NCBI GenBank assembly: GCA_002269645.1
Contig: NIVC01004366.1
Location: 1-48,331 of the forward strand
DNA from: Macrostomum lignano
Taxonomy: Eukaryota
Reading direction: 5' to 3'
Length of the DNA: 48,331 nt
Part shown: piece after piece, positions 1,620 to 37,879 of the stretch
Layout: each line of letters begins with the position of its first letter
Numbering within the stretch: position 1 is the stretch's first letter
Notes under the pieces: model-generated
Seen by the model: the letters and a program-made list of their open reading frames with translations, nothing else
What the model was told of the DNA's origin: nothing
Databases searched by the model: none
Position numbers and translations under genes: made by a program

Positions 1620-2237
1620 TAATGCTGTGCTGGGGAGAATTACTGAGACGTCAAGGCTCTCAGAGAATAACTGAGATTACGGGAGGGGGGGTTTCTGAGA
1701 TGTCAAAGCAAAAGTCAGAGGCTACTTCAAAGTTCATGTACTTTACTCAATTTTTTATTGCATTCATTGTTGGCTCGCCACGGGGGGGCGCTGATAAAAA
1801 AAGCGTAATGTAAAAAATAAAAGAAGCTTCATGTCGAAGTTAAGAGATTCATTTGGGAATCCCTACGATGTCGAGGCTTGCAGGGAATCGCTATAATGCT
1901 GTAGTAGTGCTATAATGACTCTCAGAGAGAATTACTGAAATTTCAATGCTTTAGGGTTAGGTTAGGGTTAGGGTTAGGGTAGGGTTAGGGTTAGGCTAGG
2001 GTTAGGGTTAGAAGGTTGACAGATATTTTTAGATTTCCAAGGCTTATTGGGGGGTAATGCTGAGATGTCAAGGGGGGAAGTTGATGTGTTAAAGCTTGTG
2101 GGGGGGGGGAATTATTGACATGTCAAGGCTTACAAGGTTTGACAGGAGATTTTTTAAGATTTCAAGGATATATGTAGCTTATTAAAAAACGTGTATTGCA
2201 TTTCTTTGGCGCCCCTACGGGGGGCGTAGATTGCTAG
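1620..2237 (+). mobile_element. Degenerate Helitron-like 3' region with decayed 28-bp-type repeat units
   Basis: Hairpin CGCCCC-tacgg-GGGGCG (2210-2226) followed 7 nt later by CTAG|T (2234-2238), the canonical Helitron 3' layout. Upstream units (gctgagatgtcaagg) are the reverse complement of the 37880-38158 array. Confidence 0.45.
1951..2011 (+). repeat. Interstitial telomere-like (TTAGGG)n, ~10 imperfect units
   Basis: ttagggttaggttagggttagggttagggtagggttagggttaggctagggttagggttag read directly. Confidence 0.92.
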
Positions 2238-3266: not shown

Positions 3267-4732
3267 TTATTCAGCCGACGAGTCTTGCGAAGTCGAACAC
3301 TCGTCCGCGTCGGACTTGGTCTTGATCCTTTCGGCCACAGCTGCCGTAAATGCAGCGCCCTTTCCACTACCGTCCTCGGCAAGAATCAAGTGGGTATAAA
3401 CATTCTCACAATGAATGTCTAGAAATTCTTGAATGAGAAACTGCAATTTCGGGTGCTTTTTGTACAGAGAGCCATCAACCGCGATTGCGACCTCAGCGCG
3501 CTGAATGCGCTCGACGAACACGGACAGTCCGGCAGCGACAATCTGAGCTGCGCGCACCGACAAAGCGTTCGCCAGGTACCGAACAACGTGGTAGTCCTCA
3601 TCAGAGATGCTGCTCAGTTTCAGCTCCTTCAGACAGCGGTATGTTTGGCTCAGGTCTCGGTGATTGTCCTGCTCTACTCGAGAGATGAAGGATGAAGGGA
3701 AGCTGCCTGGTGTAAGCAGCGCCGGAGACGGCTGGCCTCCGAAGACGAGACCCTCGTCGCAGAGCTTCACGAGAGTGACGCGAGCCAGCTCTCCGAGGTA
3801 CATTCCGCTGAAAAGCTTCTCGAACGTGTACGTTCCGGCATAGAGCGACTCGTTATCCAGCTGGAAGTCGAACTCAGTCTTGAGAAACTTGATCACTCCA
3901 TTGTCTCCGAACGCACCCCACTCAGTGTTCACAATGACGTATTCGTACTCTTGAAACTCGGACGGCGAATGTCCAGTCAGAGACTGCCACTTTGGAATGT
4001 TGCAGATTCTCTCCATGTAGCAGACGTTGCTGCCGGTTCCCATGATGAGCCCGATGCCGCACGATGCGTCCATGAATGCACCACTCATGAGTGTTCCAGT
4101 GGTGTCGTTCAGAACTGCGAGTACGTCGATTTTGAGCGAGTGTTTGTTGATTGCGTCTTGCAGAAGCTTCACCGGATCTTTTCCGATTCCGTCTTTGATT
4201 GATAGGGACTTGTTCAAACGCTCGATCACACCGGAAGTGAGAGAGGTGAGTCCCAGAGGGTATGAGTACGTGAATCCGAGCGGAATTCGCTTTTCGGAGC
4301 TGTCCAGCTTCTCCTTGTGGACGAACTCGGCCAGCTTATCAGCGATAAAGTCAAACAACTCGGCTGCCGTTCCCTTGAGTCTCTCAGTCGGGATGGCAAA
4401 GTTCTCGCAGCTGCTGAAACACCTGCTGCCACTGCGCAACGAAACATCGAGAATTCGAAAGTTTGTTCCGCCGAGATCCAGCGCCAAGAAGTTTCCTCTC
4501 TCGGAACCGTTAAGCAATCCGCGAACAAACGTGACAGCCATTTGAAGCGAGCTCGCTTTCCTTTGTTCTGGGTCATCGCTGAGTCCTTTCTCAATCTCCT
4601 CCCTGAGTCTATCTTTGAGCTCGCAGATCTGTTGATGGCTTATTTGAACTTGCTTATCATGGACTTTATTCGCCAATCTTTTTCCGAGGTGACTTCCATA
4701 TCCAATCGACTTGATCGTCTGATACGACTCAT
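3267..4732 (-). CDS. HK: Hexokinase copy A, intronless, 1-nt frameshift at 4643-4645 (~488 aa if repaired)
   Basis: Motifs FLALDLGGTNFRI, LGFTYSYP, NDTTGTL, GTGSNVCYME, NTEWGAFGD, FEKLFSGMYLGEL, EDGSGKGAA. The ATG at 4732 gives MSRIRRSSRLDMEVTSEKDWRIKSMISKF, homologous to the copy B N-terminus, then AAA TAA; one extra A restores the frame. The listed ORF start at 4676 is a TTG artefact. Confidence 0.93.
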
Positions 4733-5639
4733 CCTGACCTTTGTAAGCTAGTACAGAGCAAAGTATGTGTACTCGTGATAGTGCGACTGGGCACAGTGTT
4801 GCTTCGAACTGAGATCTTATAGCTTTGTCGGTGCCTAGGAGTAGAGGTGTGGCTAGAACTGCATATTTTAGCTAAATTGATTCATGTTTATGTTAAAGTA
4901 CAGTGACTAGGTGAGAATTGCTTCGCTTGAATTCGCTATCTCTGTCAGATCAGACAGAAGCAGCTTGTGAGCCTCCTTCCTTAATGGACCGCGGCTGCGC
5001 TTGATTTGCATCTCATTCTAGTCGCACATCTGCGGCATGCCGAATCACCCGTGTGAGAAAAAAGATTCAGTGAGAATTAATGAAATCGCAGAGGTTTTTC
5101 TCATATCTTGCAGTTTCTTTTGCTTACACAAAACTACACCACATGACACCAGAATGTCACTTGTGGGCTTGCAGTTAACGGTGCAAAGCGGTTTGTCTTT
5201 TTTATTTATCGAGGTACGCAACTAGGCATTATGGAATTCTATTTGTGCGGCTTGCAAAAGATCGAATCTATTTTATGACCTCGAACCCTTAAAAATCCAC
5301 AAGGCTTGCACAGCAAATTGAAAAAGCAAATGCATAGTCAAACAATGTTTCATGCTGATCTGTAGCTCGTTAAACCTAATTGAATACGTTACAGATCAAC
5401 TTCGCAAAAAACACTTTGCATTAAAAACACGGCTCAAAATATTCAAGGATCGAGTCACTGATGCAAGAACTTGGCTGTGAATTTCACATTCAGCCATCAA
5501 TTGCTTGTCGAACAAGGCAGCGCAGTACATATGTGAATATGTGATTTATACTACTCTCAGTACAATTTTTGGCTGTAATGCAGCCTGAAGTTTGGTTGAC
5601 TGTAGTGACAAGTGTGTCCCGTCGATGCGCAGCCAGTGT

Positions 5640-6520
5640 CTAACCTTCGAGTTATTCGGCAGTCAGAGCGATGAATAAAGACTGCTATTGAGCCAATTCA
5701 CTCTTCAGCTCAGCCTCCCAGCGCGAAATAGCTTCTTAAACAGGCGTGAGGAAAGGACTGCATTGATAGCAGCCTCTTGACATCGACATTGCCGGGGACC
5801 CCGTAGTCTTTGGCATTAATATGAGAACTTACGCTATCGATGGTGATGTGGCAGTTGGCTTCAAGAAAAGCTGCAATAAAGTTTTTTATGGTGATGTGCA
5901 GGAATTTTCCTTTGTCACACCCTTTGTTATGCGTGTAGAATTGACGTAGAAAAATATCTAGCTAAGAAAATGGTGATGCGCAGTCCCTTTCGCAAGCCGC
6001 CCTGCCAGTACAGTGCTCTCCGCTCCGTGAGCGACCTTGCAACCGGTGGAACGATCGGGGCATCAAATCCAAACTCATCGATGAATATATTTTATGGATT
6101 GTGAGAACTTCCGCTAAACAAACCCACTCGCAAAACTCCAAGCGCGTCAATCACCGGGGGTGTTTTTCCGGCTGGTAGATCCATTGCCAGCTGCCTGTTG
6201 TATAGGGCACCATTTTCACTGATACAATTGTCCGTGAATTGAAACTTATTTGGAAAATGTTGCCGCAGATTAGCATTCAATTTCCTTAACGTAATGAGCA
6301 GGTTAGATTCAACGAATGCCTGCATCTCCATATTCCACTCGACTCGCTTCGACCCACATTTTAGGAGCGTTTCGATTTTTCCAGAACAAACAGTCGTATA
6401 CTCGTACGTTGTTGTTCTTTTGACATTGAGATGTCCTGCAAAAGCGGTGAAATCCTCCCCTTGTTCAAAGGCTCCGATGATCCTACCTCTGTCAGCATTA
6501 TATCAGATACTAATCCTGTT
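5640..6520 (-). mobile_element. Decayed Tc1/IS630-like transposase (pseudogene)
   Basis: Frame-broken pieces in the correct order: DRGRIIGAFEQGEDFTAFAGHLNVKRTT (HTH1), EMQAFVESNLLITLRKLNANLRQHFPNK (HTH2), NIFIDEFGF (first D), ITIDSVSSH (second D), SPFLTPV*EAISRWEAELK (SPxLNPIE-type E motif). Boundaries approximate; no TIRs found. Confidence 0.75.
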
Positions 6521-6849
6521 GTTGGTTCGGCGAATTTTTTGACCGTTAGCCACGCCAAGATCTTGTGCTCCGAAGCTGTTGTGTTGTCCTCATTCTCACC
6601 GCCTTCCTCAAACAGTTCTTGGTCTTGCTTTTCCATCTTGTCTTTTTCGCAAGGGTACTCGTTCTAATAGATATTTTTGTTGCCCTATCCAAGGACAACT
6701 TTATCACGTGATCCTATCATAATATCATTATGATCCTAAAATCCTTGGTCCTATCATTATGCAGTTTAACGGGAGTTTTAGCCATAGACGGTTAGTCCAG
6801 TTTTACGAGCGTATTAAAGTTAATGCTTCTCTTTTACAAACTCTAAAAC

Positions 6850-7571
6850 TTCCACAGCAGGACTAAGCCAGGGAAGCCTCTATGGTCGCTGCGCTCCCCA
6901 GGAAGGGACACTCACCCGCCCCACCCCACTCCGCTATACAAGTTGAGGGGAATGGCATAGAATATGAAATGATGCTGCTGCTTATCGATTTCTCGCTAGA
7001 GCAGTTTGTACGCGAACTTTTGTAACACCTCTCGTATTTCATAGCTTGCTAACTGGAAAAATAATATATACACAGCCGGAGCTTCTGGAAAATGGATCTC
7101 TGCAATTCCCCGAAAGTGGACAGCAGCAGAGTTGGAGAAGTTGCGCTGAGATCCTGCGATGTTTTGCGTTGAATAGTGCAAACCGCATCTTTCTATGACT
7201 TTTAGTTAAAAAGTTATCAATCATAGAAATGAATAAACGTTGCATTTTCCTATCACTGCTTTCCAATCGGGTTTTTACCCCTAAACTTGTATGCTGCCTA
7301 AACTAGTGTCCCTTCCTTGGGGAGCGCAGCGACCATAGAGGCTTCCCTGACTAAGCATAAAGGGGAATCCATCGGTGAATTCCTTGCAAGTCTACGGAAG
7401 CTGGCTATCACGAGTGGCTTTGAAAGATTTTTAGATGATGCACTGAGAAACTGATTTTTCGTTAGCCTCAGGAATCATCTGATCCAGCAACGACTGCTGC
7501 AAGAATAAAAAAAGACCCTGTCGGACGCGCTCACCCTAGCAACTGCAATCGAAGCAGCGGAGAAGGGTGTG
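6850..7571 (+). mobile_element. Ty3/Gypsy gag fragment interrupted by a MITE
   Basis: With the MITE and one TSD copy removed it reads FHSRTKHKGESIGEFLASLRKLAITSGFERFLDDALRN*FFVSLRNHLIQQRLLQE*KKTLSDALTLATAIEAAEK, a typical retrotransposon gag GES..LR.LA..C.F...LRDRFV.GL pattern with two stops. Confidence 0.75.
6869..7349. mobile_element. 481-bp MITE, ~44-bp TIRs starting CAGGGAAGCC, 7-bp TSD ACTAAGC
   Basis: TIRs at 6869-6912 and 7305-7349 are reverse complements with one indel; ACTAAGC at 6862-6868 and 7350-7356. Confidence 0.88.
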
Positions 7572-8264
7572 TTGAGCTTATCGGAGAAATTTGAGAAACT
7601 GAAACAAGCTGAAGAAAGCGGACAGGTTGCAATATCAATGACAGGGGCGAATGTTATACATTGATAAAGAACTCCAGATTTAGATCTGCGAGCTTCCGAT
7701 TGGCCGAGCAAAAACTGCTTGTATTCAAGCGCTTGTTTTTAAGACTACTTTTTTAGGCTCATGTAGCTGTGCAACGCTTACAAGTATCTTCGCATGAACA
7801 AAGCAATAACATGCATGTGATTGAGGGGCAAAGGTAGCAGGTACGAGTACATTAAATTTATTTAATTTAGTGGGCTACTTAAAAAGACAGCGACAATCGA
7901 ATAGATTAGAATTTAGTGTTTTCTGTCGGAGTTCAAAATAGAAAAAAGGTCTTTAAGCGTCAAAAAGCTAACGGGTCTTTTACTCCAATATCGTGTAGAT
8001 TAATGGTACCTCGTAACTTCGTGTTACTTGGCCGTTCGGACTAAATTTATAGAGAATGAAACAAATCGAAAAAGATAGGATCGATATTCGACTCAAAATG
8101 GAATGACAAAATATTTAAGCATCAACTTGGGCAATAAAAGCAAAGCAGCAAAGCGGATGTCCTGCAGATCTTGTCCGATCAGATTCGGATCTTTCACAGT
8201 CGGGAGTCAAAGCAAACAAAAAGGCACTATTGCCACAACCTGCTCTCAGAAAGATAATTCACTT

Positions 8265-9704
8265 TTACTCGCCATTTGAGGTCTCGTCCCTTCGAAATCT
8301 GTCAACAACAGCAGCGGTGAAGGCCGCGCCCTTGCCGCTGCCGTCCTCAGCGTGTATTAGCCTTGTATGCGTTCTTGGGCAGTACTTGTCCAGGAACTCC
8401 TGAATCAGACCTGGTAGCACAGGATGTTTGGTGAATAGGGACCCGTCGACCGCGATTGCGACCTCAGTGCGCTGAACGCGCTCGACGAACACGGACAGTC
8501 CGGCAGCGACAATCTGAGCTGCGCGCACCGACAAAGCGTTCGCCAGGTACCGAACAACGTGGTAGTCCTCATCAGAGATGCTGCTCAGTTTCAGCTCCTT
8601 CAGACAGCGGTATGTTTGGCTCAGGTCTCGGTGATTGTCCTGCTCTACTCGAGAGATGAAGGATGAAGGGAAGCTGCCTGGTGTAAGCAGCGCCGGAGAC
8701 GGCTGGCCTCCGAAGACGAGACCCTCGTCGCAGAGCTTCACGAGAGTGACGCGAGCTAGCTCTCCGAGGTACATTCCGCTGAAAAGCTTCTCGAACGTGT
8801 ACGTTCCGGCATAGAGCGACTCGTTATCCAGCTGGAAGTCGAACTCAGTCTTGAGAAACTTGATCACTCCATTGTCTCCGAACGCACCCCACTCAGTGTT
8901 CACAATGACGTATTCGTACTCTTGAAACTCGGACGGCGAATGTCCAGTCAGAGACTGCCACTTTGGAATGTTGCAGATTCTCTCCATGTAGCAGACGTTG
9001 CTGCCGGTTCCCATGATGAGCCCGATGCCGCACGATGCGTCCATGAATGCACCACTCATGAGTGTTCCAGTGGTGTCGTTCAGAACTGCGAGTACGTCGA
9101 TTTTGAGCGAGTGTTTGTTGATTGCGTCTTGCAGAAGCTTCACCGGATCTTTTCCGATTCCGTCTTTGATTGATAGGGACTTGTTCAAACGCTCGATCAC
9201 ACCGGAAGTGAGAGAGGTGAGTCCCAGAGGGTATGAGTACGTGAATCCGAGCGGAATTCGCTTTTCGGAGCTGTCCAGCTTCTCCTTGTGGACGAACTCG
9301 GCCAGCTTATCAGCGATAAAGTCAAACAACTCGGCTGCCGTTCCCTTGAGTCTCTCAGTCGGGATGGCAAAGTTCTCGCAGCTGCTGAAACACCTGCTGC
9401 CACTGCGCAACGAAACATCGAGAATTCGAAAGTTTGTTCCGCCGAGATCCAGCGCCAAGAAGTTTCCTCTCTCGGAACCGTTAAGCAATCCGCGAACAAA
9501 CGTGACAGCCATTTGAAGCGAGCTCGCTTTCCTTTGTTCTGGGTCATCGCTGAGTCCTTTCTCAATCTCCTCCCTGAGTCTATCTTTGAGCTCGCAGATT
9601 TGTTTATGCGTCGGGAAGAATTTAGTGATGATAGACTTGATGCGCCAATCCTCCTCGCTGGTCACTTCCAAATCCAGCCGACTAGACCGTTTAACTCGGG
9701 GCAT
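8265..9704 (-). CDS. HK: Hexokinase copy B, intronless, 479 aa, intact
   Basis: Complete ATG-to-stop ORF with the same hexokinase motif set as copy A; single ~50 kDa-type domain. Confidence 0.96.
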   Translation of the reverse strand: MPRVKRSSRLDLEVTSEEDWRIKSIITKFFPTHKQICELKDRLREEIEKGLSDDPEQRKASSLQMAVTFVRGLLNGSERGNFLALDLGGTNFRILDVSLRSGSRCFSSCENFAIPTERLKGTAAELFDFIADKLAEFVHKEKLDSSEKRIPLGFTYSYPLGLTSLTSGVIERLNKSLSIKDGIGKDPVKLLQDAINKHSLKIDVLAVLNDTTGTLMSGAFMDASCGIGLIMGTGSNVCYMERICNIPKWQSLTGHSPSEFQEYEYVIVNTEWGAFGDNGVIKFLKTEFDFQLDNESLYAGTYTFEKLFSGMYLGELARVTLVKLCDEGLVFGGQPSPALLTPGSFPSSFISRVEQDNHRDLSQTYRCLKELKLSSISDEDYHVVRYLANALSVRAAQIVAAGLSVFVERVQRTEVAIAVDGSLFTKHPVLPGLIQEFLDKYCPRTHTRLIHAEDGSGKGAAFTAAVVDRFRRDETSNGE

Positions 9705-10552
9705 TGTTTTAGACTATAATACTTGAACTTCGTTGGAAAACAGCTCGCGACTGCTATACTTCTGACCTCCAATTTTCTCAGTGCTTAGCGAAAGATTTTC
9801 AAGACTGCCGGACAGAAATTGATTGGCGTATTATATCTGCTTTTGAAGAAGACTCCCCTGCTTTTGTGTTTGAGACTAACAGCAACGCTAAGGACAGCTT
9901 ATCTAAGAACGCCTTCTATGTGGTCTTATCAGCGGGCAGTCCCAGCCGAGCTGTGAAACTCCTGTTTTTTTGCTTGTTGCTATCTGGCTTAGTGTACATG
10001 ATCGCTGTTTAACCGTAACATAGCTTCCCGTACAAGTTGCTGGGCTCTATGCACAGTTATTTGTGTCTTTGCAAGCTCTTTTCAAAAGCTTTTTTATTCT
10101 TAAGATAACAATGACCCTGCGGTAGGCAAGGATTGTTGGCCTTTGAATTTTAATGCATACAGCAGATATCGCGGTAAAAATTAGAGCCAATGCTCAGAGT
10201 AGTATAGATATATAACTAAACGCATTTTTTTATGTTAGTCTGCAGTTTTTTTTGCTTGGGTTCACTTCGTACGGTTATGAGACCACCTTTCTCTTATCTG
10301 TTGCTTTTGACCACACGCGACACAACTTTCTAACCCTCTTTGTGGTGGCGTCGGTCAATTTGACATGACAAATGTACTATCAGTTTAAATGGTGGCTTTT
10401 GATTTTTTGACTCTGTAGCTACACATTTATTGTCAACAATGTCAGCGGTTTCTGGGAAAGAATTAAATAGTGCTTCATGATGTGGTTTGGACACTTAGTG
10501 GCTAACTATGCTAAATATAGTCGAAGTACAAGATCATTGGATTTTGGCTGAC

Positions 10553-10660
10553 GGGAGGGGGTTTCATAAGACCGAAATTTCTCAACGCTGAAAATTTTGC
10601 GTGGTCCTCGTTATATTAAGTTTTCTAAGTTGTGAAATTTTAGTCTTGTGAAAGCGACCC
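10553..10660. mobile_element. Short degenerate MITE, same terminus family as 45438-45630
   Basis: The right end, reverse-complemented, reads gggtcgctttcacaagactaaaatttcacaac versus gggacgctttcataagacctaaatttcacaac at 45438; the left end reads gtttcataagaccgaaatttctcaacgc. Confidence 0.6.
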
Positions 10661-11959
10661 GGACTGGCATCTTCAGGTCTGTTTTCTGACGACGAAAAAG
10701 TTCTGAGAGATCTTTGCAATTCTGTCCAATCGTGCAATCCTGTGAAATATTTTTGTTCCAATCTAATATTTTAAGTTGACATGAAATTTCCATTTTGATC
10801 CGAGAGAGACTTGGACTTTGGTTGCACCTTGTTTTGATGCCACGGGACCTCGTCTGCAGTTTTTGATTATTAAAAATGAGGCAGTTAGTGACACTGACAG
10901 TTTTTATGACAAGTGACACGGCAGTGCTATGTCTGTGTTCATGCTTATACTATGCAATATACTCTTGGTAGATAATCAGCAATATACGACTGGCCCATAT
11001 TTTGTAGGTAAAAGACAACAATCATATGTATAAAATGGGATAGTTTTTTAAATGCCCCCTTGGTGTCACATAGCCTATACATTGTCCCCCAATTAGCTGA
11101 CCAATGGGGAAACCTGATCGCTCAAATACAGTGGCATTTCGGTAAGCCATGCAGGAAATTGCTGGAGTTACATTTCTCTTTGGATACTTACATCGACCTT
11201 GATTGGAATTTCCAATCCAATGTGCATAATGAGAACTTAGGCGAATCAAAACAGTCCCAATTCAGCTCAGCGGAGTGAAATATCGATGGCTGTGGATTAA
11301 ATGAACCACGCACAAATGGAATCAATCTTACATGTCGATCAAATTTCTATTCAAAAGAGTATTTCTTTGGCCATTCGTTTTCAAAGTTTCCGGATTCTGA
11401 TTCTTCAATTTACCATGCAGTCGTGAAAATTAAGAAACAGTCTCTGCGCAACCACTCACAAAAGCTAGTTTTAAAGTACAAATACTCTTCTCTTCATTCA
11501 ACTGATGGCTTATGGACTTTCTTTCTTTAGTCAAGTAACCCACGTAGTGTCAAAGAGAAAGTATTCTGTACGAGCTATATGTAGCTGTGTATTGAATAGA
11601 CAATACTTTTGGACCATTCTAGCCATCGTACATTAAACATAAACTTGTTGCCATAAACTTACTTTTTGATCAAAGCAACTGAATGAGACAATGACTGCTG
11701 TAATTTTGCATTTATTCTATCGCATTGTATTTTTCTTTGCATCCTTCTTGAGTGTTAGTAATAGAACAGAAAGCTTTGCTACTTTGAGTAGCATTCAATT
11801 AATTGCAGCCTTGATTCGTGCAAACAACGAATGGGCGTCCACTGAAGTAGAAAAAAATCTGATTGGTCCACAAAAAGCTATACATTACAGTGGCATTTAA
11901 TGCTATCTATCTAGAAGCTTATGGACGCGAATCGCTAATCTGCTTAGGTTTCCATCTTT

Positions 11960-12367
11960 ATGAAATTCGCATCATTTCGTGCAGTTGGTCTTGCTGGCTG
12001 CTGCTTGACCTGCCTGCACAGATGGCAGAGAGCTCTGGCTGCTGCCGGTGTCGAGTCCATCAATTCGACCCTGAATGCGTCAGGCAACTGGAGTGTCGAC
12101 GGCGTCGGAGACAGCGAAATTGACGAGCACAATCATCCACCATCTGCGTCCAGATACCGATCGGCATTTGTTCTCATAGTCAGTCTGAGCGCGATGTGCC
12201 TTCTGGCGATGGGCTTCCTGGCCTACGGCCTGTTCTCCCGCGCCGAGGCCATCAAAGATGACGACGCTGCGGCCGAGATGGACTTGGATCAGGCCATGTT
12301 CGGAGGCCTGCACGACGGAGTTGGCGGCGGCGGCGGCGGCGGCGGTGACGGAGGTTTTGGCGACTGA
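11960..12367 (+). CDS. Small predicted type I membrane protein (135 aa), unknown family
   Basis: GC-rich ORF in AT-rich flanks; hydrophobic N-terminus, N-glycosylation sequons NST/NAS/NWS, TM-like helix AFVLIVSLSAMCLLAMGFLAYGLF, acidic/Gly tail. Confidence 0.65.
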   Translation: MKFASFRAVGLAGCCLTCLHRWQRALAAAGVESINSTLNASGNWSVDGVGDSEIDEHNHPPSASRYRSAFVLIVSLSAMCLLAMGFLAYGLFSRAEAIKDDDAAAEMDLDQAMFGGLHDGVGGGGGGGGDGGFGD

Positions 12368-13432
12368 TTTTTCACCGAAATGTTTCTACTGCCTGTTACT
12401 GTGCTGTTTTACTTGGGCCAATTTAACCAATACTTTCAATTGAAACGGATTCACTTGTCTACCAGAGTCCAGAGACCGTGTTGCTATGGTGGTATAGTTA
12501 GTTCTGATGAACTCTGAGCCAATCGGATCGACGACTTAAGTATTGTTTAAGTAAGTAGTCCTTGCCCTGAGCACGCAAACGCACAGATAAGTACGACAGG
12601 CACACACTCTCACAGGATGTACAGGCGGTCCTGACTTGTCTTTACGGGTAATTGTTACTCTGCATACCCCTCGTGGTAATGGTGAGAGTTTAGGACCAAA
12701 ATGTTACTAATTGCAAAACTGCTATATGCTTTTAGTTTCTGGTAAAAAAAACTAGTGGACGTGAGACAGATTATTAGGTTGAAACTGAAGTAAATATTCT
12801 TACAGCTTGTCAGATCTTGCGACTCTGTCAAATAAAGGAAGCCCATTTGGCTCGTTAGTCCAAATTTGATTTCTCTCTGCATGTGCTCCCTCTACAGGTT
12901 ACTGATGATCCCCTGCCTCTATCTGTTAGCATGTCTTTTGTATTTGAACTATGCTGATTAACTCTCTCTTGCGAATACCTATATTTGCCGAGTACACACC
13001 ACCAATGCTGATGCTAATATTGAGGTTTTTTGTTTCGCAAATAGGAATTACGCGCAAACTGTGTGCGTCAAAGTTCGCGCAGTAAATACCGTTTTTCGAT
13101 TCGCGTGAAGCCAATCTTCCTTCGCAAATATACAGTATAAATGCCTTCGTGGTTGTAAATAACGTACGAGTATATGGCTGCTGTCTATCTGAAGTGCTGC
13201 CGGCCACAAATCGATCAGCATCAGGTTCTGTTCAGGTCTGTTTGACCGGATTGTCACTGCAGGTTTACTGCAGTCTCTGACTCATCAATGCAGTTCCACT
13301 ATACGGTTCGGTTGCGCTGATGGATTGAGGGCGCAGTAACAATCCGATAGTTAAACTGTGGACGAATCGTGCGCGGTCCGTGCTCCCGCAGGATATTGAC
13401 CAGCAGCCAGGCCTCTAAAGCACTAGCCAGTC

Positions 13433-13467
13433 CAGGGAATATTCTACTCTATGTAGAGTATTCCCTG
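13433..13467. mobile_element. 35-bp hairpin mini-element with CAGGGAA ends and 7-bp TSD GCCAGTC
   Basis: cagggaatattctac-tctat-gtagagtattccctg (15-bp arms, one mismatch), flanked by gccagtc at 13426-13432 and 13468-13474. Confidence 0.7.
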
Positions 13468-15632
13468 GCCAGTCCCTCTATCTAGATCGGGGGCAGAACA
13501 GGAAATGTAACTTCCGCAAAAGCAAATTTGCATTAGATTTTGCTGCGAACGGGAAAATAACAGAAGGTTAGGACTCGTTGAATCACTTTAGTCCGCTGAG
13601 ACCATCTGCTGGCTCCCAAAAGGCGAGCCATATTTGAATTTTCTAGTAAACCAGCTGCAGATTGCGGGGGCGGGTTTTACCTAAAAATGCTGGACTCTTC
13701 GTCTATTCGTCTATGGATATTCGTCTATTTAAGGGTCCGCTTCTCCCGTGTTTTCCCATGGAAGCCCAGAAGCATCGGTGATGAGCAGTACATACGCGTA
13801 CTTCTTTAAACTTTGCCAAATTTGGCTAAGCATAAACAGATCTGTATATGGATTCTCAACGTTGACAAAGGAAGATTTGAAGCCTAGCCTAGTGAGGGAT
13901 GCGTGGAATCAATACACATAAAATTTGGGCTGGGCACGCAGCTCAGATCGGAGAAGGATGCGTTGTTTGTTGATTAAGATGTTTGCAATCAATATTTCAG
14001 CCGGGGCTTGATGTAGACTGTCGCTCTGAGCGGGCGGGCGGCTATTGCAGCCCCATGCTGCAGCAGAATCTAAGCTATTACGAGTATAAGCTGCGAATAA
14101 GCGAGGCGAACACGCGCCCAGGTGACTCCACACGCGTAAATGCTGGGGGAATGTGTTTAGGCCACGCGAAATATAATCCAGACAGATAGAGAGGAGGGCC
14201 TTTCAAGAGGCAGACAGACAAGGGAATGGAAATAGAATAGGTCTCGTCACATTTTCTCTGCAAACCGGATAGAACTAATGAGAGAAAAGGGATTACGAAG
14301 CTTATATAATATGCCTATGTATAGATACTCTTATGCAGCTGCCTATATATACTGCATGCGGACTGCATTGGGTCTCAATATGGACGACTACATGCATGCA
14401 ATCAATTTTAGAGTTATTTACATTTTGCAAAATCCCGAGATGATATGCGCAAATAGGGAATTATCTCCCAGTATTATTGTTTCATGACGCAAATTCTAGT
14501 TTTTTTATGAGATTACACCGTTTACATGTATTCGCCATTGACTAAATTACATATAAATTGTCAAATTACATTAGCGAAATAGAATTGTGAAGCCGAAAAA
14601 ATGGAGTGCGTCCGAGTGCCACTTCAATCATCCGAGATGCGTGCATGACAACCGAAAATAATTCCAAAGAAAGGCATCTCCAACGAAGCATCAAATTATA
14701 AAACATGCAAAATGCTATTGCAAACACAGCTCTGAATTCTGTGTTCGCTTCTAAAAATGATCAATAATAGATCGTCCATCGCTGCTTCAATAAGCCTCAG
14801 CTTCCAGAATTGACTCAGCCAGTCAGTTCGTGGATACAATCTGGGGTAATTACGTAGATTGGATAGAAAATTCGCCTCAATCGAATAAATATTTACACTT
14901 GAATAGAATTAATGGCCTTCGCGCATCACCACAGCGTAAGATGAGTAAACGTAAAGACGTAAAGCATATGTATCACCATATAGGCTTGGGTGTACTTCTG
15001 TGCAAACAAAGCATTTTGTTAATTCGCAGGAGGGCGTCGAAGTAACGGAATGCAAGTAATGAGACCTATGATGCACGTAATGGGCACCAGCTTGTAATTC
15101 ACGCCAGTTTAGAAAATGATGCAGCTGTCAGCACGTACGGCCCGGTTCTATCTTAGTTAATCACCGCAAAAATACGACCATATAATGGGCTGTGTGAAAT
15201 TCGATCCCATTTTTGCGCTGCAAGCCATTCAATTTTTAATGAACCCGGCCGCTGACGGATGTGAGACATATGGGTAAAGAAAACACGGGTACAGTAACTA
15301 TAGTATTAAATATTTAGTAATTATGCTCGCTTGCGTTCGGTTTCGCTTAACTGAAAGGCTTACTCCATAGCACATCGTTGTACTTTTACAGGCATATATA
15401 AGCGTAGTACCTCATACGCGTACGTAAAAGTCATTTCGAAAGTGAAACGCAAGGGATACGAGCACACGGATACACACGGACCTACCTATACTTTTGGGTA
15501 TGTAAAAATTGAAGACTTTTGAACATTATATGCTGCATGCTACACATATTGCTCAACTACTGCAGCGCCAGATACTACGAGGGGTGTCCCAGAAGTATGT
15601 GTCACTTTTGCTTGCTTCCACAAGTATATATA

Positions 15633-16246
15633 CCTTTTCAAGCTGGACTTTGGCAAAAGTGACTTCAATTTTGGCAGCCCATAGAAAAAGCATACGCCTG
15701 CCAGCAACATGTCTATGGTCAACTGTGGTAGAATCGGTTAGAGCGTGCATTCAACTTTGGCAAAAGTGAGCGAATTTTGGCAACTCAACCGAACAAGATG
15801 CCGAACGCGCGTATATCGCTGCAGGATCGAGAACGGCTGGTGCGCAGCTACCAAGAAGGAAGAGACTGGAGACGACTGGCGAAGGACCTCGACATAAAGA
15901 GAACCACGGCCGACACAATTATCCACAGGTTTGTCACTGAAGATCGCGTTGCGCTGAAGCAACGAGGAGGAAGCCGTGAGGCCAAAATTTACACCACCAA
16001 TGTTAAATGCTGTGACTCGGTTTGTTGAAGAGAAGCCCACCATAAGGTTGAGGGAGATAAAGGAGAAGATGGAAGCCGAACTTCCAGGCGCACCTGGCGT
16101 GTCGGTGCAGGCAATCAGCCTGGTTGAATGCACGCTCTAACCGATTCTACCACAGTTGACCATAGACATGTTGCTGGCAGGCTTATGCTTTTTCTATGGG
16201 CTGCCAAAATTGAATTGTCACTTTTGCCAAAGTCGAGCTTGAAAGG
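15633..16246 (+). mobile_element. Internally deleted Tc1/IS630-like element: ~123-bp TIRs, TA TSD, N-terminal HTH region only
   Basis: TIRs at 15633-15755 and 16123-16246; TA on both sides. ATG at 15798 gives MPNARISLQDRERLVRSYQEGRDWRRLAKDLDIKRTTADTIIHRF...RGGSREAK, then after a frameshift near 15985 FTPPMLNAVTRFVEEKPTIRLREIKEKM...; no DDE domain. Confidence 0.88.
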
Positions 16247-18106
16247 TAAATATTAATGTGTGTTAAAAAATCATATGCCTTAAAAGTCAGCGGCTTATTT
16301 TAACTTTCATACCATGAAAGTCCGATTTTTATAAGTGCTTCCTGCTGTAAGCAGCATGCATTTGTTTGCATACCCTTAGCCATAGAAATACGCACCACAT
16401 AGTACTTCTATGCTCACTCAGAAGAAAGCCACAAGTAGAGCTGCTCAAGCACAGAGTTGCAAGACAGCAGCTGCAAGATCTGTTCCAGTCATGGACCAGA
16501 TACCCTTGTGACGTTTGAATGCCGACAATTTTTTTTTGGAGTCGAGGTAATGAATTTTTCATAAGATATTCAAGATTTGTCGACCAGCCGGACTAAATTC
16601 AAGTCGTAACAAAACTGGTTTCGGTTGTCCAGGTTGGCATTCGCATAACCATACAAATAGAATTTTACAAGTGCAGTTTTTAAAAATGTGATATTTATAA
16701 TTAACCACAGCCGGTGTTCTATTTTTGAGAAAATACAAATGTTTTAACAAATACAGTTTACTAAATAAGATTTCTATCGACAGTTAAAAGGTATGATAAG
16801 ATGATAAGATGTAGATTCTAAAATATTTGCAGTGAGATAATTGATAATAGCATTCTGTTAATTTTTTATTGAGTTTTAAACATGACTTTCTTGCGTTTAC
16901 TTAGCCAGCCCCTTTTTTTGTCGCGCCGCCCGGGCCCCGCCCGCCACCCGACGACAACCGGCTAGCCGGGCCAAAAGCTTACAAAATCATCGGGCTAACC
17001 GGCAGGAAAGCGCGCTCTCGAGCTCTCGCTTCTCCCGGCTAGAGGGCCCAAAGCGCGCTCCCATACAATCAAATGGGCGCCCGCAGGCACGTTAGCTGGC
17101 TAGTTTTTAAATGATTCTGTTCTGGTTAAATAACTATTAAGGTAAAATACTGAAATATTAGTAACTAGTAAAGTAGTAATTAATTATATTTCAAAAGGAA
17201 TGGCATCAACTGACGAGCGACAACCGTTGTTATTGTCGAGATTTAGGATCTTTTCATACATGGATCGATTGATTAGATGTTTAAATTGATATTTTAATAC
17301 TAAGTATGCTAGATTCATGTATGATATACTAGATACAATTTATACTCGTAATGACTTAATATTGTACATTTTAAAAAATCTGTTTCCCAATTTTCAATGA
17401 CTTGGACATGTTTTCTAAAAAGAGGTCATTTAATTTTAATTTAACGACTAATGACAATTTCTTATTTTCCTACAAATACTCTTTGAGAGACAAAGAGACA
17501 GATAAAATGCAATTTATTAATAGAATAGCATCGCAAAATTTGCAGTCATGACTGATTACTTAAGCTTAGCTGAATGCTGTAGATCATATAAAAATGAAAA
17601 GAAAAATTTTTTATTTTTTTAATTTATGTAGGCCCTAGTCATTTGAAGTGGGGCAGAGGAAGTTTTTTTTGGAAGTGGGTTGAATTATAATTTGTTGCTA
17701 TCACTAATGGGGTGGGGTGGATTCCACGTTGAAATGCTATTGGCATTGAGTTTGCACAAATAAATCTGGAAATTGTGTGCAGACAAATCACAATGCGTTA
17801 TTTCCTCCTGTTTTACTCCAACAGCTAGGTCCTCAATTCCAGGGGGAGGGTAGTTGTAATTGTAGTTGAGCAGTCTTATGCAGGCATAGTCATTCAGACT
17901 TTAGACTCAATAGTCTAGATACCATAATTTTCTTTCTGAGTTTCTGAACTGATTACTGTCAATAGAGTAGCGCTGCCACCACTGTAATTTCGTATTACGG
18001 AATGTAGAGATCTCAGAGCTCATTTGGAGTTGAGATTAATTCTGTTGTTTAATGCCTTACAGGCAAATAACTCAAGTTAAACTGTTAAGGGCTTTGTTTA
18101 ATTAAT

Positions 18107-27998: not shown

Positions 27999-31621
<3,623 letters not shown>

Positions 31622-32439
31622 CTACTTCGTAGTAGATGTTATTTCAATGAATTTCAATAAATTTTCAAAATTAACCATCGAAGCTTGTTGTGACCTCCTC
31701 ATCTTTTGTCATACATGCAGTAATCATACTGTATTATTGTAGCAAAAAGTACTGGTTGTACTTTTACTTTACATGCGCATTAGCGCAGACAGTGAGACAG
31801 TTCCAGAATTGTGGCTTCACAAAGTTGATCGTTTCATTCTCACATTGGTGACAGATTCCAGACCTTGTAGCAGCAGAAGACTGCAAACATCGGTTCAAGT
31901 TCGTGTCTTATCTTATTAAACACAAGCACACACTTAATGCATCCTTGGAGCTGAACTTGTAAAAGACGGCCAGTTTCCTTCAATAGTTTTTCTGCCCTAA
32001 TGCTGTCTCTATTATCTTTGAGCAGAGCATTTAGTATTCACGCATTACTGTACAAGAGAGGCCGGCGCACTCCAGTTCACAGCGTACCACAGCCGTTTGA
32101 ATTGCTGCCTACAATAGAGATCGAATGGAGAGACAAATTGAAAGACTTGCATGGCTTGTCCAGCAGCAGCGACTCTGTCCACTGCAGCTCGCTCAATATC
32201 CAAGCTGGCTTGCAAGACCCCCTTGCGACAGCGTCTCAAGCTATAAAATGCCCGTCCTCTTAGCCAAGCACAATGAGCCTGCGCATAGCTTGTAAAAGCA
32301 TTGCTGTTCAAAATTTGTTTGCCTATCGGAGGGTTGTAGGATGTTTTTTTGCGAGCGTTTCCACAAAGCCACTAAAATGTTATTCATTTCCGGGGGGGGG
32401 GGGGTTGTGCTTTCATATATCTGACACTTTATGTCTCCG

Positions 32440-32950
32440 AAACTTCAACTCCGCAAAACTTCATATCTCCGACTTTTCATATCTCCGACACTACTTAGCT
32501 CTGACACTTCATATCTCCGACTTTTCATATCTCCGACACTTCTTAGCTCTGACACTTCATATCTCCGACACTTCAGTTCTTCGACACTTCATATCTCCGA
32601 CACTTGATATCTCCGACACTTGATATCTCCGACACTTGATATCTCCGACACTTGATATCTCCGACACTTGATATCTCCGACACTTGATATCTCCGACACT
32701 TGATATCTCCGACACTTGATATCTCCGACACTTCATATCTCCGACACTTCATATCTCCGACACTTCATATCTCCGACACTTCATATCTCCGACACTTCAT
32801 ATCTCCGACACTTGATATCTCCGACACTTCATATCTCCGACACTTCATATCTCCGACACTTCATATCTCTGACACTTCATATCCCCGACACTTCATATCT
32901 CCGACACTTCATATCTCTGACTTTTCATATCTCTGACACTTGATATCTAC
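32440..32950. repeat. 16-bp tandem array CACTT(C/G)ATATCTCCGA
   Basis: Direct periodicity, ~30 units. Confidence 0.95.
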
Positions 32951-32964
32951 GAGTATCGCTAAGG

Positions 32965-33710
32965 TTTAAGTGACTAAATCCAGAACCGGAACTCTCAGGG
33001 TCAAATTTGAGTGACTAAATCCAGAACCGGGGCTCTCAGAAGAGTCAAATTTGAGTGACTAAATCCAGAACCGGGACTCTCAGTCAAATTTGAGTGACTA
33101 AATCCAGAACTGGAGCTCTCAGAGTCAAATTTGAGTGACTAAATCCAGAACCGGGACTCTCAGAGTCAAATTTGAGTGACTAAATCCAGAACCGGGACTC
33201 TCAGAGTCAAATTTGAGTGACTAAATCCAGAACCGAGACTCTCAGAGTCAAATTTGAGTGACTAAATCCAGAACCGGGACTCTCAGAGTCAAATTTGAGT
33301 GACTAAATCCAGAACCGGAACTCTCAGGGTCAAATTTGAGTGACTAAATCCAGAACCGTGACTCTCAGAGTCAAATTTGAGTGACTAAATCCAGAACCGA
33401 GACTCTCAGAGTCAAATTTGAGTGGCTAAATCCAGAACCGAGACTCTCAGAGTCAAATTTGAGTGACTAAATCCAGAACCGAGACTCTCAGAGTCAAATT
33501 TGAGTGACTAAATCCAGAACCGAGACTCTCAGAGTCAAATTTGAGTGACTAAATCCAGAACCGTGACTCTCAGAGTCAAATTTGAGTGACTAAATCCAGA
33601 ACCGGGACTCTCAGAGTCAAATTTGAGTGACTAAATCCAGAACCGTGACTCTCAGAAGAGTCAAATTTGAGTGACTAAATCCAGAACCGGGACTCTCAGA
33701 GTCAAGTTCA
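32965..33710. repeat. 41-bp tandem array GTCAAATTTGAGTGACTAAATCCAGAACCGGGACTCTCAGA (~18 units)
   Basis: Direct periodicity; variation is concentrated in the CCG(G/A/T)(G/A)ACT block. Confidence 0.96.
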
Positions 33711-33973: not shown

Positions 33974-36586
33974 TCAGGCACCGCCAAGCAGCTCCAGCAT
34001 TGTCCTTAGCCTGTCTTTGTCGTCGAAGCCACCCAACTTTGTCTTCTTCTTCTGGCCGCTCCGTTTAAGCTGGCGCCGACTGCTGCCTCTGCTATGCGCG
34101 CGCTGGTTGCGCCTGAAATTGATTAATTTTTACTATTATTTTGCAACGTTACGCTAGTAGGCTGGAAGCTAAGCTAAATGCACACAAATAGACTTCACTC
34201 TGTCATCATTACTCCTTTGCCAACTTTTTACAGTGCTTTTTTGCGAAACCAGCTGCCGTAGAGACTGCTTCCCCTGAACTTCTCATCAAACTCTTATCAG
34301 GGATCAAATCAAGTCAAGTGAAGTCAAGATTGTGAGAGTCGTGAGCAGGTTGATCATAAGCACTCTAACCCCTATCACCCTTCTCACCCTGCTTATTCTT
34401 CTTCCCCTTCTCATCCAATCACCTTCTCAACCTTCTAGCATTTCGGTTGTGGGCACCCTGACGCAACGTCTTTGGCGACATTGTCGTGCAAACCAGCGCT
34501 GACGGCAACTCGTACACACGCTCACACAGGGTGCACAGCGGCCCTGACTTTCTAATCGTCAGGCATGTACACTGTCTGTGCCTTGTGGGTTGGCCCTCAT
34601 GGGTTCGAATCGCACGACAACCCCCGGGCCCCAACTTAATACAATGTATGGCCGCGCACGGAATCGAACTCGGAATTGTGCCGAGTGTCAGACGCGTCTA
34701 GCTCTGAGCTACACGGCCCCCTAGGTTTAGGGTTAGGGTTAGGGTTAGCAGACGGCAGTCAAAAGTCGTAAACCCCTCTCACCCCTCTCATCCCTCTTAT
34801 CCCTCTTACCCCTCTCACCCTCTAACCCCTCTCACCCCTCTTACCCCTCTTACCCTCTAACCCCTCTCACCCTCTCACCCTCTCACCCCTCTAACCCTCT
34901 CACCCCTCTCACCCTCTCACCCTCTCACCCTCTCAACCTCTCACCCTCTCATCCCTCTCACCCTCTCACCCCTCTCACCCTCTCATCCCTCTCACCCTCT
35001 CACCCCTCACCCTCTCACCTCTCACCCTCTCACCCCTCACCCTCTTACCTCTCTCATTCTCTCACCCCTCTCACCCTCTCACCCCTCTCACTCTCTCACC
35101 CTCTCACCTCTCTCACCTCTCTCAGCCCCCTCTCTCTCACCTTTGGCCACTGCGCTTTGATTTTCCGCGGCCGCCCGCCTTGCCGCCCTTCCAGCCCCGC
35201 TCACGCCAGTACTTTTCCCGTCGCCTGGTAAGGAAGCGCCGATAATCTGCCGCCGGATCTTCGGCTTCTCCCCGCTGGCCCCGGCGGCCCTGACGGTCCG
35301 ACCGGCCACCGCCGATCAATACCATCTTGGCCGAGCCGACTCGAACCCGCTTCCCGTTTGCCACCAACACAAAGCGAAGCGCAACGTCGCCGTGGCGCTG
35401 GTCTCGCTTAGAACGGCGCATCAGTCGGTGCACCTGTCGCAGCAGCTTGCGCAGGGATAGGCGCAGGGTGCACTCGTTTCTATGGCAACTGGTGCGTACG
35501 CCGCTCAACCGTTGGCCGCCGCCACTTGAGCTGCCAGCGGCCACAGCTTTCTGACTTTTTCTTGACGGCTTTGCGTGTCTCTGGCGACAGTTCTTCGGCG
35601 GCTTGGAGCCGAGCGGCAGAGCGACCAGATCTTTCCCGATCTGGTTGGACCAGAACGGACATAACATGTACGCTTGTAATTCCAAAAAGTTGAGTTCAGT
35701 TAAAGATTTAAATAGGCCATTTCGAATGTTGGACTTTTTTACGAATATAATAATTTAAAAATGTTTGATTACACCTACCCCGATAGGCAGATGTGCAACC
35801 GACAGCTCAGCCGCAGCTATTTGCGCGGCGCATCTGAAGGCTGCGTACGGCTGTTCCGTCCAAGGACTGATGGGGGGGGGTCGCCACACACACCCTCAAT
35901 TACCCCAGCTAATGCTGGCACCCATTTTACAGCTGGGTGAACTGAAGCAATGCAGAGTTAAGTGTCTTGCTCAAGGACAGATTGTTCCGAGTGGGTAGAG
36001 AATCGAACCCCCGACCTTCAAGTCGTGAGTCCGACGCTCTAACCACTAGGCTACAACCCCCTGATCAAATATTACCACGAAAGTGTATAAAAACTAGTCT
36101 CTTGATTACTGACAATTACAAAACCGGCTACAGGTGTACAGAGACGTTGACTTTCTCACCATCATCAGGCCCAACTTTCTTACCTGGTACACAATCCTCC
36201 ACGACCGATCGCCGCGTTTCCTAGCGTACACCCGGCCGCGCCAGATGGTCAGGCGACGTCCTTCCCAGCCGCGCTTCGCCAAAGTGAACAGTGTCATGCG
36301 CTGCTGCTTCTGCTTTTTCCTCACTCCTCCTCCTCCTCCTCCTTTTACACTGACGCTGCCCAGCCAGGAGATCCGGTAGGTTGCATCGCCGAACTGCAGC
36401 CGGCCCGAGTCGCAGCGGGCTCGGCACTGGCGCCAGCTGCGCGCTCCGTGACCGGCAAGGCGGCGGCACCAGTCGGGCACCGGCTGGCAGGAGGCGGCTG
36501 GCAGCAGCTTCGCAGCCGGATAGGCGGTCTGGCAGTTCAGCTTCCTGGCGTTGCTGCCACCGCTGCTCGCTGTCACAGTGTCTGAA
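33974..36586 (-). CDS. Orphan basic protein with a PH-like segment; exons ~36586-36184, 35640-35141, 34112-33974
   Basis: CAG|GTAAGA donor at 36184 (phase 0) joins the acceptor at 35640; AG|GTGAG donor at 35141 (phase 2) joins TTTCAG|G at 34112; TGA at 33976-33974. No upstream ATG found, so the 5' end is incomplete. Confidence 0.65.
34512..34720 (-). mobile_element. tRNA-derived SINE family B, best-preserved copy
   Basis: Head GGGGCCGTGTAGCTCAGAGCTAGACGCG...GAGTTCGATTCCGTG with A and B boxes; body shared with five other loci in the window. Confidence 0.75.
34727..35140. repeat. Short (TTAGGG)3-4 (34727-34748) followed by a CCCTCTCA/CCCTCTAA-type microsatellite (34775-35140)
   Basis: Read directly; intronic in the 33974-36586 gene. 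Confidence 0.85.
35765..36061 (-). mobile_element. tRNA-derived CORE-like SINE (family A)
   Basis: Head GGGGTTGTAGCCTAGTGGTTAGAGCG...GGTTCGATTCTC; central TGTCCTTGAGCAAGACACTTAAC...CAGTTCACCCAGCTGTAAAATGGG resembles the MIR/CORE domain. Confidence 0.85.
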
Positions 36587-36746: not shown

Positions 36747-37170
36747 ACACGCGGATCGTACAAGCGAGGCAATATTGGTTCTGTTCTGTTGCGTCACGCG
36801 GATCGTACAAGCGAGGCAATATCGGTTCTGTTCTGTTGCGTCACGCGGATCGTACAAGCAAGGCAATATCGGTTCTGTTCTGTTGCGTCACGCGGATCGT
36901 ACAAGCGAGGCAATATCGGTTCTGTTCTGTTGCGTCACGCGGATCGTACAAGCGAGGCAATATCGGTTCTGTTCTGTTGCGTCACGCGGATCGTACAAGC
37001 GAGGCAATATCGGTTCTGTTCTGTTGCGTCACGCGGATCGTACAAGCGAGGCAATATCGGTTCTGTTCTGTTGCGTCACGCGGATCGTACAAGCGAGGCA
37101 ATATCGGTTCTGTTCTGTTGCGTCACGCGGATCGTACAAGCGAGGCAATATCGGTTCTGTTCTGTTGCGT
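36747..37170. repeat. 47-bp tandem array CACGCGGATCGTACAAGCGAGGCAATATCGGTTCTGTTCTGTTGCGT (~9 units)
   Basis: Period 47 (tcacgcggat at 36841 and 36888); nearly homogeneous. Confidence 0.96.
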
Positions 37171-37879
37171 GTTAGCAGCTGGTCAACTCTGCGTCACCAA
37201 CCTTCCACAATTCCTGAAGCTCCTGAAGTCCTGAACCATCAAATTAGCCATAAAAATGTCACACAAAAGGTGTTAAAAGCGAAGAAAGGAAATCTGTACA
37301 AGCCATTTGACAGGGCAAAAGTGAAGGAGCCTCAGGGAACCAAGCGGTGGTAACGCTCAAAAATCGGGAGCCCCCTCCAGGAAATTGTCTACTGAATAGT
37401 AGGTAGGAAGGAATTTAAAGCGAATCTCTAACAGAGTGCAAAATCCCGGCCTTTCCCCCCTCCTTCTAAAGCTCCCAAAAAGGGAAGACGACCTGAAAAA
37501 AATTTATAGGCTGTTCAGTGATCGCATTAATTTGATTTGCTTGTTTTTAGTCAGCTTTAATTTTGAAGCACCGTTCAATGCAACTAACAGTTAGGAACGG
37601 TACTTAACACTTTCGTTTAGCAGAAAATAGCATAAAATACGAGTATGTTTCTGAAATAAAATGGTAAAGACTCACCATGTGACATACAACAGAAATGTCC
37701 AGGCTAGCAGAGCAACGCTTTGGGGCTACAACGCAAATTTTAGATATGAATAACATTTTTAGATTAGTTGAATAGCAATCAGCGCCCCCTGTTGGGGAAG
37801 CAACAAAGAAAGAAGTTATTATTTTTGAATAAACTGCATGTGGCTTCTGACCTCTCACTCAGCCGTGCCATCTCACCAA

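Follow-up and report, generated by a model that had tools for sequence, protein, structure and literature searches.

Contig NIVC01004366.1 of the Macrostomum lignano Mlig_3_7 assembly (GCA_002269645.1), analysed here over a window of 48,331 nucleotides, carries a tandem pair of hexokinase genes, both intronless, both encoded on the minus strand and separated by ~3.5 kb (Table 1). The upstream gene is referred to as copy B and the downstream gene as copy A. No third hexokinase copy or fragment was found in the window, where tblastn returned only these two genes. The spacer between them contains a MITE-like inverted repeat (6863-6907/7311-7355), and in one of three further contigs carrying the pair (L001) it holds an additional 1.46 kb near window position 6755.

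Table 1. Features of the tandem hexokinase locus (window positions)
Feature	Position	Strand	Remarks
Copy B (upstream gene)	8265..9704	-	Intact intronless hexokinase, 479 aa plus stop; unbroken ORF
Copy B private N-terminal segment, codons 1-35	9600..9704	-	36/105 nt unlike copy A
Copy B homogenised core, codons 36-409	8478..9599	-	1 difference from 3507-4628
Copy B private C-terminal segment, codons 410-479 plus stop	8265..8477	-	60/171 aligned nt differ
Graded edge of the copy B C-terminal segment	8449-8477	-	First 29 nt after the core
Copy A (downstream gene)	3267..4732	-	ATG at 4732, stop at 3267-3269; 488 aa when the frame is intact
Copy A private N-terminal segment	4629..4732	-	Encloses the 1-nt deletion site
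Copy A homogenised core	3507..4628	-	Near-identical to copy B core
Copy A private C-terminal segment	3267..3506	-	Includes a 22-codon tail without counterpart in copy B
Copy A 1-nt deletion site	4644..4646	-	Eight-sequence alignment, column 89
Intergenic spacer, 3.5 kb	4733..8264	none	Unrelated to both outer flanks

Copy B matched the Pfam families Hexokinase_1 (PF00349, E 1e-57, 195.6 bits) and Hexokinase_2 (PF03727, E 1e-68, 231.7 bits), and copy A scored 197.4 and 234.3 bits for the same two domains, both copies thus lying above the curated cut-offs of ~24 bits. We take the combination of these domains to denote a hexokinase of the actin-like ATPase fold. Copy B could be aligned end to end with each half of human HK1, and the motifs LDLGGTNFR, GTGSN, NxEWGAFGD, EKxxSGMYLGE, VDG(S/T) and EDGSGKGAA are kept, as are the serine of GFT(F/Y)S(F/Y)P and the ND of LNDT, which includes the catalytic aspartate. 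The sugar-binding motif WTKGF reads LNKSL, with the lysine retained and the threonine replaced by asparagine. Judged by these residues, hexokinase activity is likely. A first protein search returned mostly two-domain vertebrate hexokinases at ~40% identity and no close relatives usable for dating the duplication.

The two genes are mosaics of extreme similarity and extreme divergence. At an offset of 4971, the central tracts differ at one of 1122 nt (3786 C/8757 T), a synonymous CTG/CTA change at Leu316, giving a dS of 0.004 and a dN of 0 over 374 codons. The N-terminal 105 nt are 34% different between the copies (pS 0.90, dN 0.22), and the 171 aligned nt at the C-terminal end are 35% different (pS 0.89, dN 0.21). 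Synonymous sites are saturated in both ends, in agreement with the old duplication proposed by the first-pass annotation, which had also described the near-identical cores and the termini differing at many codons; the four terminal peptides that it quoted are all present. Its remark that the non-coding flanks share no obvious similarity was borne out too, as identity at the same offset falls to 16-33%, the random level, beyond ~3300 and ~4700, and neither the outer flanks nor the spacer show any relationship between the copies. The core is therefore a contiguous tract in which divergence, at silent sites too, is significantly below that of the remaining gene: synonymous differences are distributed unequally between core and ends (Fisher p = 5e-53), and a stretch of 842 nt or more without a mismatch has a probability of ~5e-27 at the mismatch rate of the whole gene. 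At its 3' edge the core grades out, with two differences in the 29 nt past it and then a difference at almost every third base. GC3 is 0.66 in the core, 0.60 in the copy B ends and 0.51 in the copy A ends (core versus copy A ends, p = 0.006).

Three further contigs of the assembly (L001, L002 and L003) carry the pair as well, with the same mosaic structure and boundaries. In the non-coding flanks the contigs differ from one another by 0.1-3%, so that they represent distinct versions of the locus, and this divergence matches the three subgenomes with ~2% SNP divergence reported for M. lignano (PMC10733133). Across the eight cores, from copies A and B of all four contigs, five sites vary, each of them synonymously, and none is fixed for a difference between A and B. 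Core distances averaged 1.9 between A and B and 2.0 among A copies; paralogues within one genome are thus no further apart than the same paralogue across subgenome copies. A T at core column 495 is common to one A copy and one B copy on different contigs, while a G at column 948 is specific to copy A and present on three contigs. The copy B N-terminal segment is identical on the four contigs apart from one synonymous site in L003. Between the window and L001, copy A differs at 3 of 1122 sites in the core, 4 of 240 in the C-terminal end and 0.9-2.6% in the flanks, a contrast that is at best suggestive of post-duplication conversion, to be read with the coding constraint, the small counts and the mosaic contigs in mind. 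Contigs switch nearest relative around copy B, so the single-SNP core patterns, the shared variant and the exact number of differences may be unreliable.

Near-identical paralogues in a polyploid assembly could also be produced by read correction, or by short-read and RNA-seq polishing that turned moderately different cores identical. A single PacBio read set underlies the four contigs, all of which were assembled with Canu and polished with Pilon on Illumina DNA and RNA-seq reads, so that they are not fully independent; the reads used by Pilon included multi-mapping ones, paralogue representation in Mlig_3_7 is known to be error-prone, and homopolymer-type 1-nt deletions occur in two copies. 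Multiple mapping affects 93% of read pairs in this assembly, and chimeric scaffolds account for 36% of its length (PMC10733133). Polishing, however, cannot make divergence jump from ~0.1% to 35% over a few bases, and the 1.1-kb core is far below PacBio read length, so that reads would anchor in the unrelated flanks. A collapse limited to NIVC01004366.1 is unlikely because three other contigs show the same mosaic without a fixed A/B core difference, and the survival of the A-specific G on three of the concordant contigs indicates that the pipeline has not erased every A/B difference. We consider an artefactual origin of the core identity very improbable, and at most a few true core differences would have been erased by polishing.

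The locus is very probably the product of an old duplication in which the central 1122 nt have been kept near-identical by interlocus (ectopic) gene conversion, while the ends escaped long ago. On this reading, 105 nt at the start of the coding sequence and ~210-240 nt at its end would have left the homogenised tract at an early stage. A break within the core of one copy would then be repaired from the other, and the new strand would re-anneal only where the copies match, so that tracts would not extend past the block of homology and the boundary would be self-sustaining. Positions immediately beyond it would gradually be lost from the block, leaving a graded 3' edge. The arrangement of the pair is older than the divergence of the three subgenomes of the neopolyploid, and homogenisation probably recurred until about that divergence or later. 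Copy B would be the gene that is expressed and under constraint, and it is possibly also the net donor; the core GC3, nearer to that of the copy B ends, is a weak pointer to this direction and is as readily explained by GC-biased conversion.

Homologous repair and conversion require stretches of near-identical sequence, and paralogues 35% apart are therefore unlikely to convert in one recent event. This bears on another possible history, in which the centre of one fully diverged paralogue was copied once, recently, into the other. Such an event would account for the lack of intermediate core divergence and of fixed A/B differences, both expected of a conversion that only just preceded the separation of the subgenomes. 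Where copies are 35% diverged and all synonymous sites have changed, as in the ends, however, the near-identical stretches needed for repair would be absent, an in-frame replacement exact at both ends is unlikely, and the graded 3' edge fits the erosion of a long-standing tract. We regard a single conversion as improbable, and homogenisation was probably long-running, on the basis of the homology requirement and the graded edge. The recently homogenised core of the first-pass annotation thus stands with respect to homogenisation and sharp boundaries, which recur on four contigs, and falls with respect to one recent event.

It is conceivable, if rather unlikely, that the boundaries are also held by selection for two isoenzymes with a shared, co-evolving core and separately conserved N- and C-terminal modules, maintained in all three subgenomes. 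The terminal modules combine a dN of ~0.2 with saturated dS, and under such selection they would set kinetics, oligomerisation or location, by analogy with the C-terminus of the T. brucei hexokinases HK1 and HK2. The first-pass annotation had described the ends as targeting or regulatory segments, for which the alignment with human HK1 shows a wider role in the fold: residues 17-35 fall on its first helix, and the diverged C-terminal segment aligns with the region of human hexokinase-1 bearing the conserved VDG[ST] and EDGSGKGAA, of which VDGS and EDGSGKGAA are retained in copy B. By this alignment, the diverged C-terminal segment is part of the catalytic fold and more than a targeting tail.

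The proposal that the pair provides two isoforms fared less well, and the difficulty lies in copy A. In NIVC01004366.1 this gene is out of frame: one A is missing at 4644-4646, and as assembled it reads MSRIRRSS...SKFK and then meets an in-frame TAA at 4640-4642. The run is AAA in the window, AAAA in L002 and ATAA in L001 and L003, and copy A, at 1466 nt in the window, measures 1467 nt with an intact frame in L002 and L003. Since the deletion is unique to NIVC01004366.1 and lies inside a homopolymer, it is probably an assembly error. An intron restoring the frame was rejected, the sole GT...AG candidate being 21 nt long and in the wrong frame, and the other three contigs being in frame without introns. 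In L001 a premature TAG at codon 478 removes only 11 tail residues. Copy A is consequently intact on two of the four contigs (L002 and L003), and copy B on three of four.

Copy A may thus be an unexpressed or decaying duplicate, redundant through polyploidy, the centre of which is overwritten by copy B, a possibility compatible with conversion to which we give less than even weight. A gene call for copy B is present on all four contigs, with an identical protein (P0121) called on three contigs of GCA_002269645.1, versus none of four for copy A, and the three A-type translations had no exact match in the protein collection. A search with the 79-aa A-type C-terminus returned nothing above 56% identity, with arthropod and metagenome fragments only, a weak negative in that copy B, which shares a 15-residue run, was also missed. 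Besides the frameshift and the premature TAG, the private ends of copy A differ among contigs by four replacement, one nonsense and one silent change (three, one and one in the C-terminal segment), versus no replacement and one silent change in the copy B ends; the ratio of replacement or nonsense to silent changes is 5:1 in the copy A ends and 0:5 in the core (Fisher p = 0.015, with small counts). Against decay, the reading frame is intact in L002 and L003, the frameshift is confined to a homopolymer on one contig, the L001 stop takes away no more than the 11 tail residues, all four copy A core variants are silent, and the low dN of the ends relative to their saturated dS points to purifying selection through most of the history of copy A.

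Conversion of this kind is a textbook mechanism, and the value of the locus lies in the example and in the annotation. What makes this an unusually clean case is the passage of silent divergence from zero to saturation over a few bases of genes that lack introns, replicated in three subgenomes. M. lignano is a laboratory model flatworm, and the pair could serve to time conversion relative to a recent duplication of the genome and, provided that both copies are expressed, to test the function of hexokinase termini. For annotation, copy A is without an entry in the public record, and short reads from the core are unassignable to either copy. Our literature search turned up no account of the locus, nor any of M. 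lignano hexokinases undergoing gene conversion.

The classical examples of interlocus conversion are the human gamma- and alpha-globin pairs. Duplicated yeast histone genes are a further case of gene conversion and concerted evolution (PMC4700949). As in such concerted tandem duplicates, the M. lignano pair has a contiguous tract that is near-identical even at silent sites, bounded sharply by much older divergence, and paralogues within one genome that are as similar as the same paralogue across genome copies. Unlike the globin and histone cases, the tract consists of coding sequence only, the genes lack introns and are saturated at silent sites in both coding ends, and the comparison involves three subgenomes of one neopolyploid animal and not species.

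Among hexokinases, the TbHK1 and TbHK2 genes of Trypanosoma brucei also lie in tandem, and the few positions at which they differ are concentrated at the C-terminus, the part that controls activity. These genes are 98% identical with unique 3' UTRs (PMC3195984), and recombinant TbHK2 is inactive alone despite the near-identical proteins (PMC8256278). Both systems consist of two largely near-identical hexokinase genes, but the trypanosome enzymes bear a glycosomal PTS2 signal and arose by an independent duplication in an unrelated lineage, whereas the M. lignano ends are far more diverged and at both termini. Co-evolution by ectopic gene conversion has been proposed for Physcomitrella hexokinase genes (PMC3045890), where, as here, conversion was invoked for paralogues more alike than their age suggests. 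That proposal was based on phylogeny, with genes dispersed on different scaffolds; in M. lignano, in contrast, 3.5 kb separates the two genes, and the sequence itself shows the tract and where it ends.

The two hexokinase genes of the window, copy A downstream and copy B upstream, each carry two Pfam hexokinase domains and align end to end, without introns, with each half of human hexokinase-1. No third hexokinase copy was detected in the window by tblastn. Comparison of the pair bears out the first-pass annotation in its main observations: at an offset of 4971 the two 1122-nt cores differ at a single site, 3786 C / 8757 T, and this change is synonymous (CTG/CTA at Leu316); the coding ends are strongly diverged, and the flanks are unrelated, with identity at random level (16-33%) outside ~3300-4700. 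The comparison of silent divergence along the gene that it had proposed gave a dS of 0.004 in the core versus a pS of 0.89-0.90 in the ends (Fisher p = 5e-53 for silent differences; P ~5e-27 for the core run without mismatches). With dN at 0.21-0.22, the ends are thus old and shaped by purifying selection, whereas the core is young, silent sites included. Protein-level constraint is ruled out as the cause of core identity by this identity at silent sites, leaving homogenisation as the only explanation. The 5' edge of the core is abrupt, while the 3' edge is graded (two differences in the initial 29 nt, then almost every third base); past codon 466 the tails of the two copies cannot be aligned.

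Features of the hexokinase pair and of the surrounding contig
Feature	Position	Strand	Details
Copy A	ATG at 4732, end at 3267	minus	hexokinase gene, frame broken in this contig
Copy B	8265-9704	minus	intact 479-aa ORF
N-terminal segment	codons 1-35 (105 nt)		34% of nt different; pS 0.90; dN 0.22
Core	codons 36-409 (1122 nt); 3507-4628 (A), 8478-9599 (B)		1 site different; dS 0.004; dN 0
C-terminal segment	codons 410-466 (171 nt)		35% of nt different; pS 0.89; dN 0.21
23-bp satellite CATGTAAAAAATCATAGAAGCGT	1-1580, reaching contig end		~70 copies, 90% match
Short telomere-like array TTAGGGTTAGGCTAGGG	1951-2011		3.6 copies
MITE-like element in spacer	6863-7355		45-nt inverted arms, 89% complementary, 403 nt apart
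NWD1/NWD2 NACHT-WD40-related single ORF	39567-43397	minus	1276 aa; Pfam Beta-prop_NWD2_C (E 1.8e-123), HTH_NWD1 match
Minisatellite arrays	28807-29206, 32412-33705, 34774-35124, 36748-37170, 37861-38159, 44941-46261		periods 8 to 47 nt

The locus was assigned to its source assembly (GCA_002269645.1, Macrostomum lignano Mlig_3_7, of which the window is the entire contig NIVC01004366.1) through the complete copy B protein and a fragment of it. The same tandem pair was found on three more contigs of this assembly: NIVC01003845.1 (L001), NIVC01003705.1 (L002) and NIVC01001189.1 (L003). This assembly comprises three subgenomes with an SNP divergence of ~2.2% (1.1% when only coding sequence is counted); one copy in its four-copy blocks is usually redundant, and chimeric scaffolds make up 36% of its length (PMC10733133). 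Non-coding flanks differ by 0.1-3% between the four contigs, and all four have an identical mosaic with identical boundaries. The eight cores (four A, four B) contain five variable sites, every one silent, and no fixed A/B difference; pairwise distances are 0-4, with means of 1.9 (A-B), 2.0 (A-A) and 1.0 (B-B). A T at alignment column 495 is common to L001 copy A and L003 copy B, a G at column 948 is restricted to copy A on three contigs, and at column 105, the last informative site before the 5' edge, L003 copy B has the A-type base. The cores are thus wholly mixed between paralogues over the timescale of subgenome divergence. The mosaic arrangement predates that divergence, and homogenisation probably lasted until about then or later.

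A single set of PacBio reads underlies all four contigs; the assembler was Canu, and polishing was by Pilon with both DNA and RNA-seq Illumina reads. The nearest relative among them switches around copy B (window ~7200-16600): upstream, the window, L001 and L002 are almost identical and L003 stands apart, while downstream it is L001 that stands apart, the other three being alike. This switch may reflect a chimeric consensus or genuine exchange between subgenomes at this gene. Single-SNP patterns in the core and its exact difference count should not be leaned on. Polishing cannot be the source of the main pattern, because divergence jumps too far, from ~0.1% to 35%; nor were all A/B differences erased, since one A-specific variant is still present on three contigs.

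We conclude that the core has been homogenised by interlocus gene conversion limited to the 1122-nt block. The first-pass annotation had proposed an old duplication with a recently homogenised core; the homogenised core stands, but a single recent event is disfavoured. Homologous repair requires near-identical sequence, so once the paralogues had reached 35% divergence, a one-off event would hardly get started, and the graded 3' edge also points the other way. Given the same requirement, tracts begun within the block would also have to stop within it, making the boundary self-maintaining. Taken together, the repair requirement and the graded edge favour a core kept homogeneous since duplication over one recent event. 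GC3 is 0.66 in the core, 0.60 in copy B ends and 0.51 in copy A ends (p = 0.006 for core versus copy A ends); the core being closer to the copy B ends hints that copy B was the net donor or that conversion was GC-biased.

The ends had been described as terminal (targeting or regulatory) segments; they are not simple tails, however. Residues 17-35 align with the first helix of the hexokinase fold, and codons 410-466 with the part of HK1 bearing VDG(S/T) and EDGSGKGAA, motifs kept in both copies. True extensions are confined to residues 1-16 and a stretch at the very C-terminus, 13 residues long in copy B and 22 in copy A. It had also been overlooked that copy A is out of frame in this contig: AAA at 4644-4646, between the N-terminal peptide and the core, leads to a TAA stop (...SKFK-TAA). 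The matching site is AAAA in L002 and ATAA in L001 and L003, placing the deletion, which lies inside a homopolymer, in the window contig only among the four; copy B on L001 has a comparable AAAA to AAA loss. Both are probably assembly errors.

Evidence on copy A function is divided. In its favour are the intact frame on two of the four contigs (L002 and L003), a low long-term dN/dS and exclusively silent variants in its cores. Against it, copy A has a gene call on none of the four contigs, versus all four for copy B; A-type proteins were not found in the protein collection, a weak negative as the C-terminus search also missed copy B; L001 copy A has a TAG at codon 478; and its private ends show four replacement, one nonsense and one silent change among contigs, versus none and five (replacement and silent) in the core (p = 0.015, on small numbers). 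Copy B ends show no replacement and one silent change.

Both genes are single uninterrupted ORFs, whereas the average for genes of M. lignano is 4.9 introns (PMC5730564), which suggests a retrocopy as ancestor of the pair. Both have LNKSL at the usual WTKGF sugar-binding site (copy B residues ~176-181), with Lys retained, Thr replaced by Asn and the remaining catalytic motifs conserved, and their highest identity to outside proteins is only ~40%. By sequence, the pair may form a divergent hexokinase subfamily. Elsewhere, the satellite CATGTAAAAAATCATAGAAGCGT also occurs downstream of copy A on L001. In the spacer, L001 has a 1.46-kb insertion (L001 9894-11354; ~window position 6755) that adjoins the MITE-like element and has a 4-bp flank overlap that may be a target-site duplication. 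The numerous minisatellite arrays are in keeping with the description of the M. lignano genome as rich in repeats.

No earlier report of this M. lignano locus was found in the literature; its interest is modest, as a clean example and an annotation correction. In kind, it is a classic case of tandem duplicates evolving in concert. T. brucei TbHK1 and TbHK2 offer a parallel at the level of function: the two are 98% identical, each has a 3' UTR of its own (PMC3195984), and TbHK2 is inactive by itself (PMC8256278). Conversion among hexokinase paralogues has been proposed in moss (PMC3045890).
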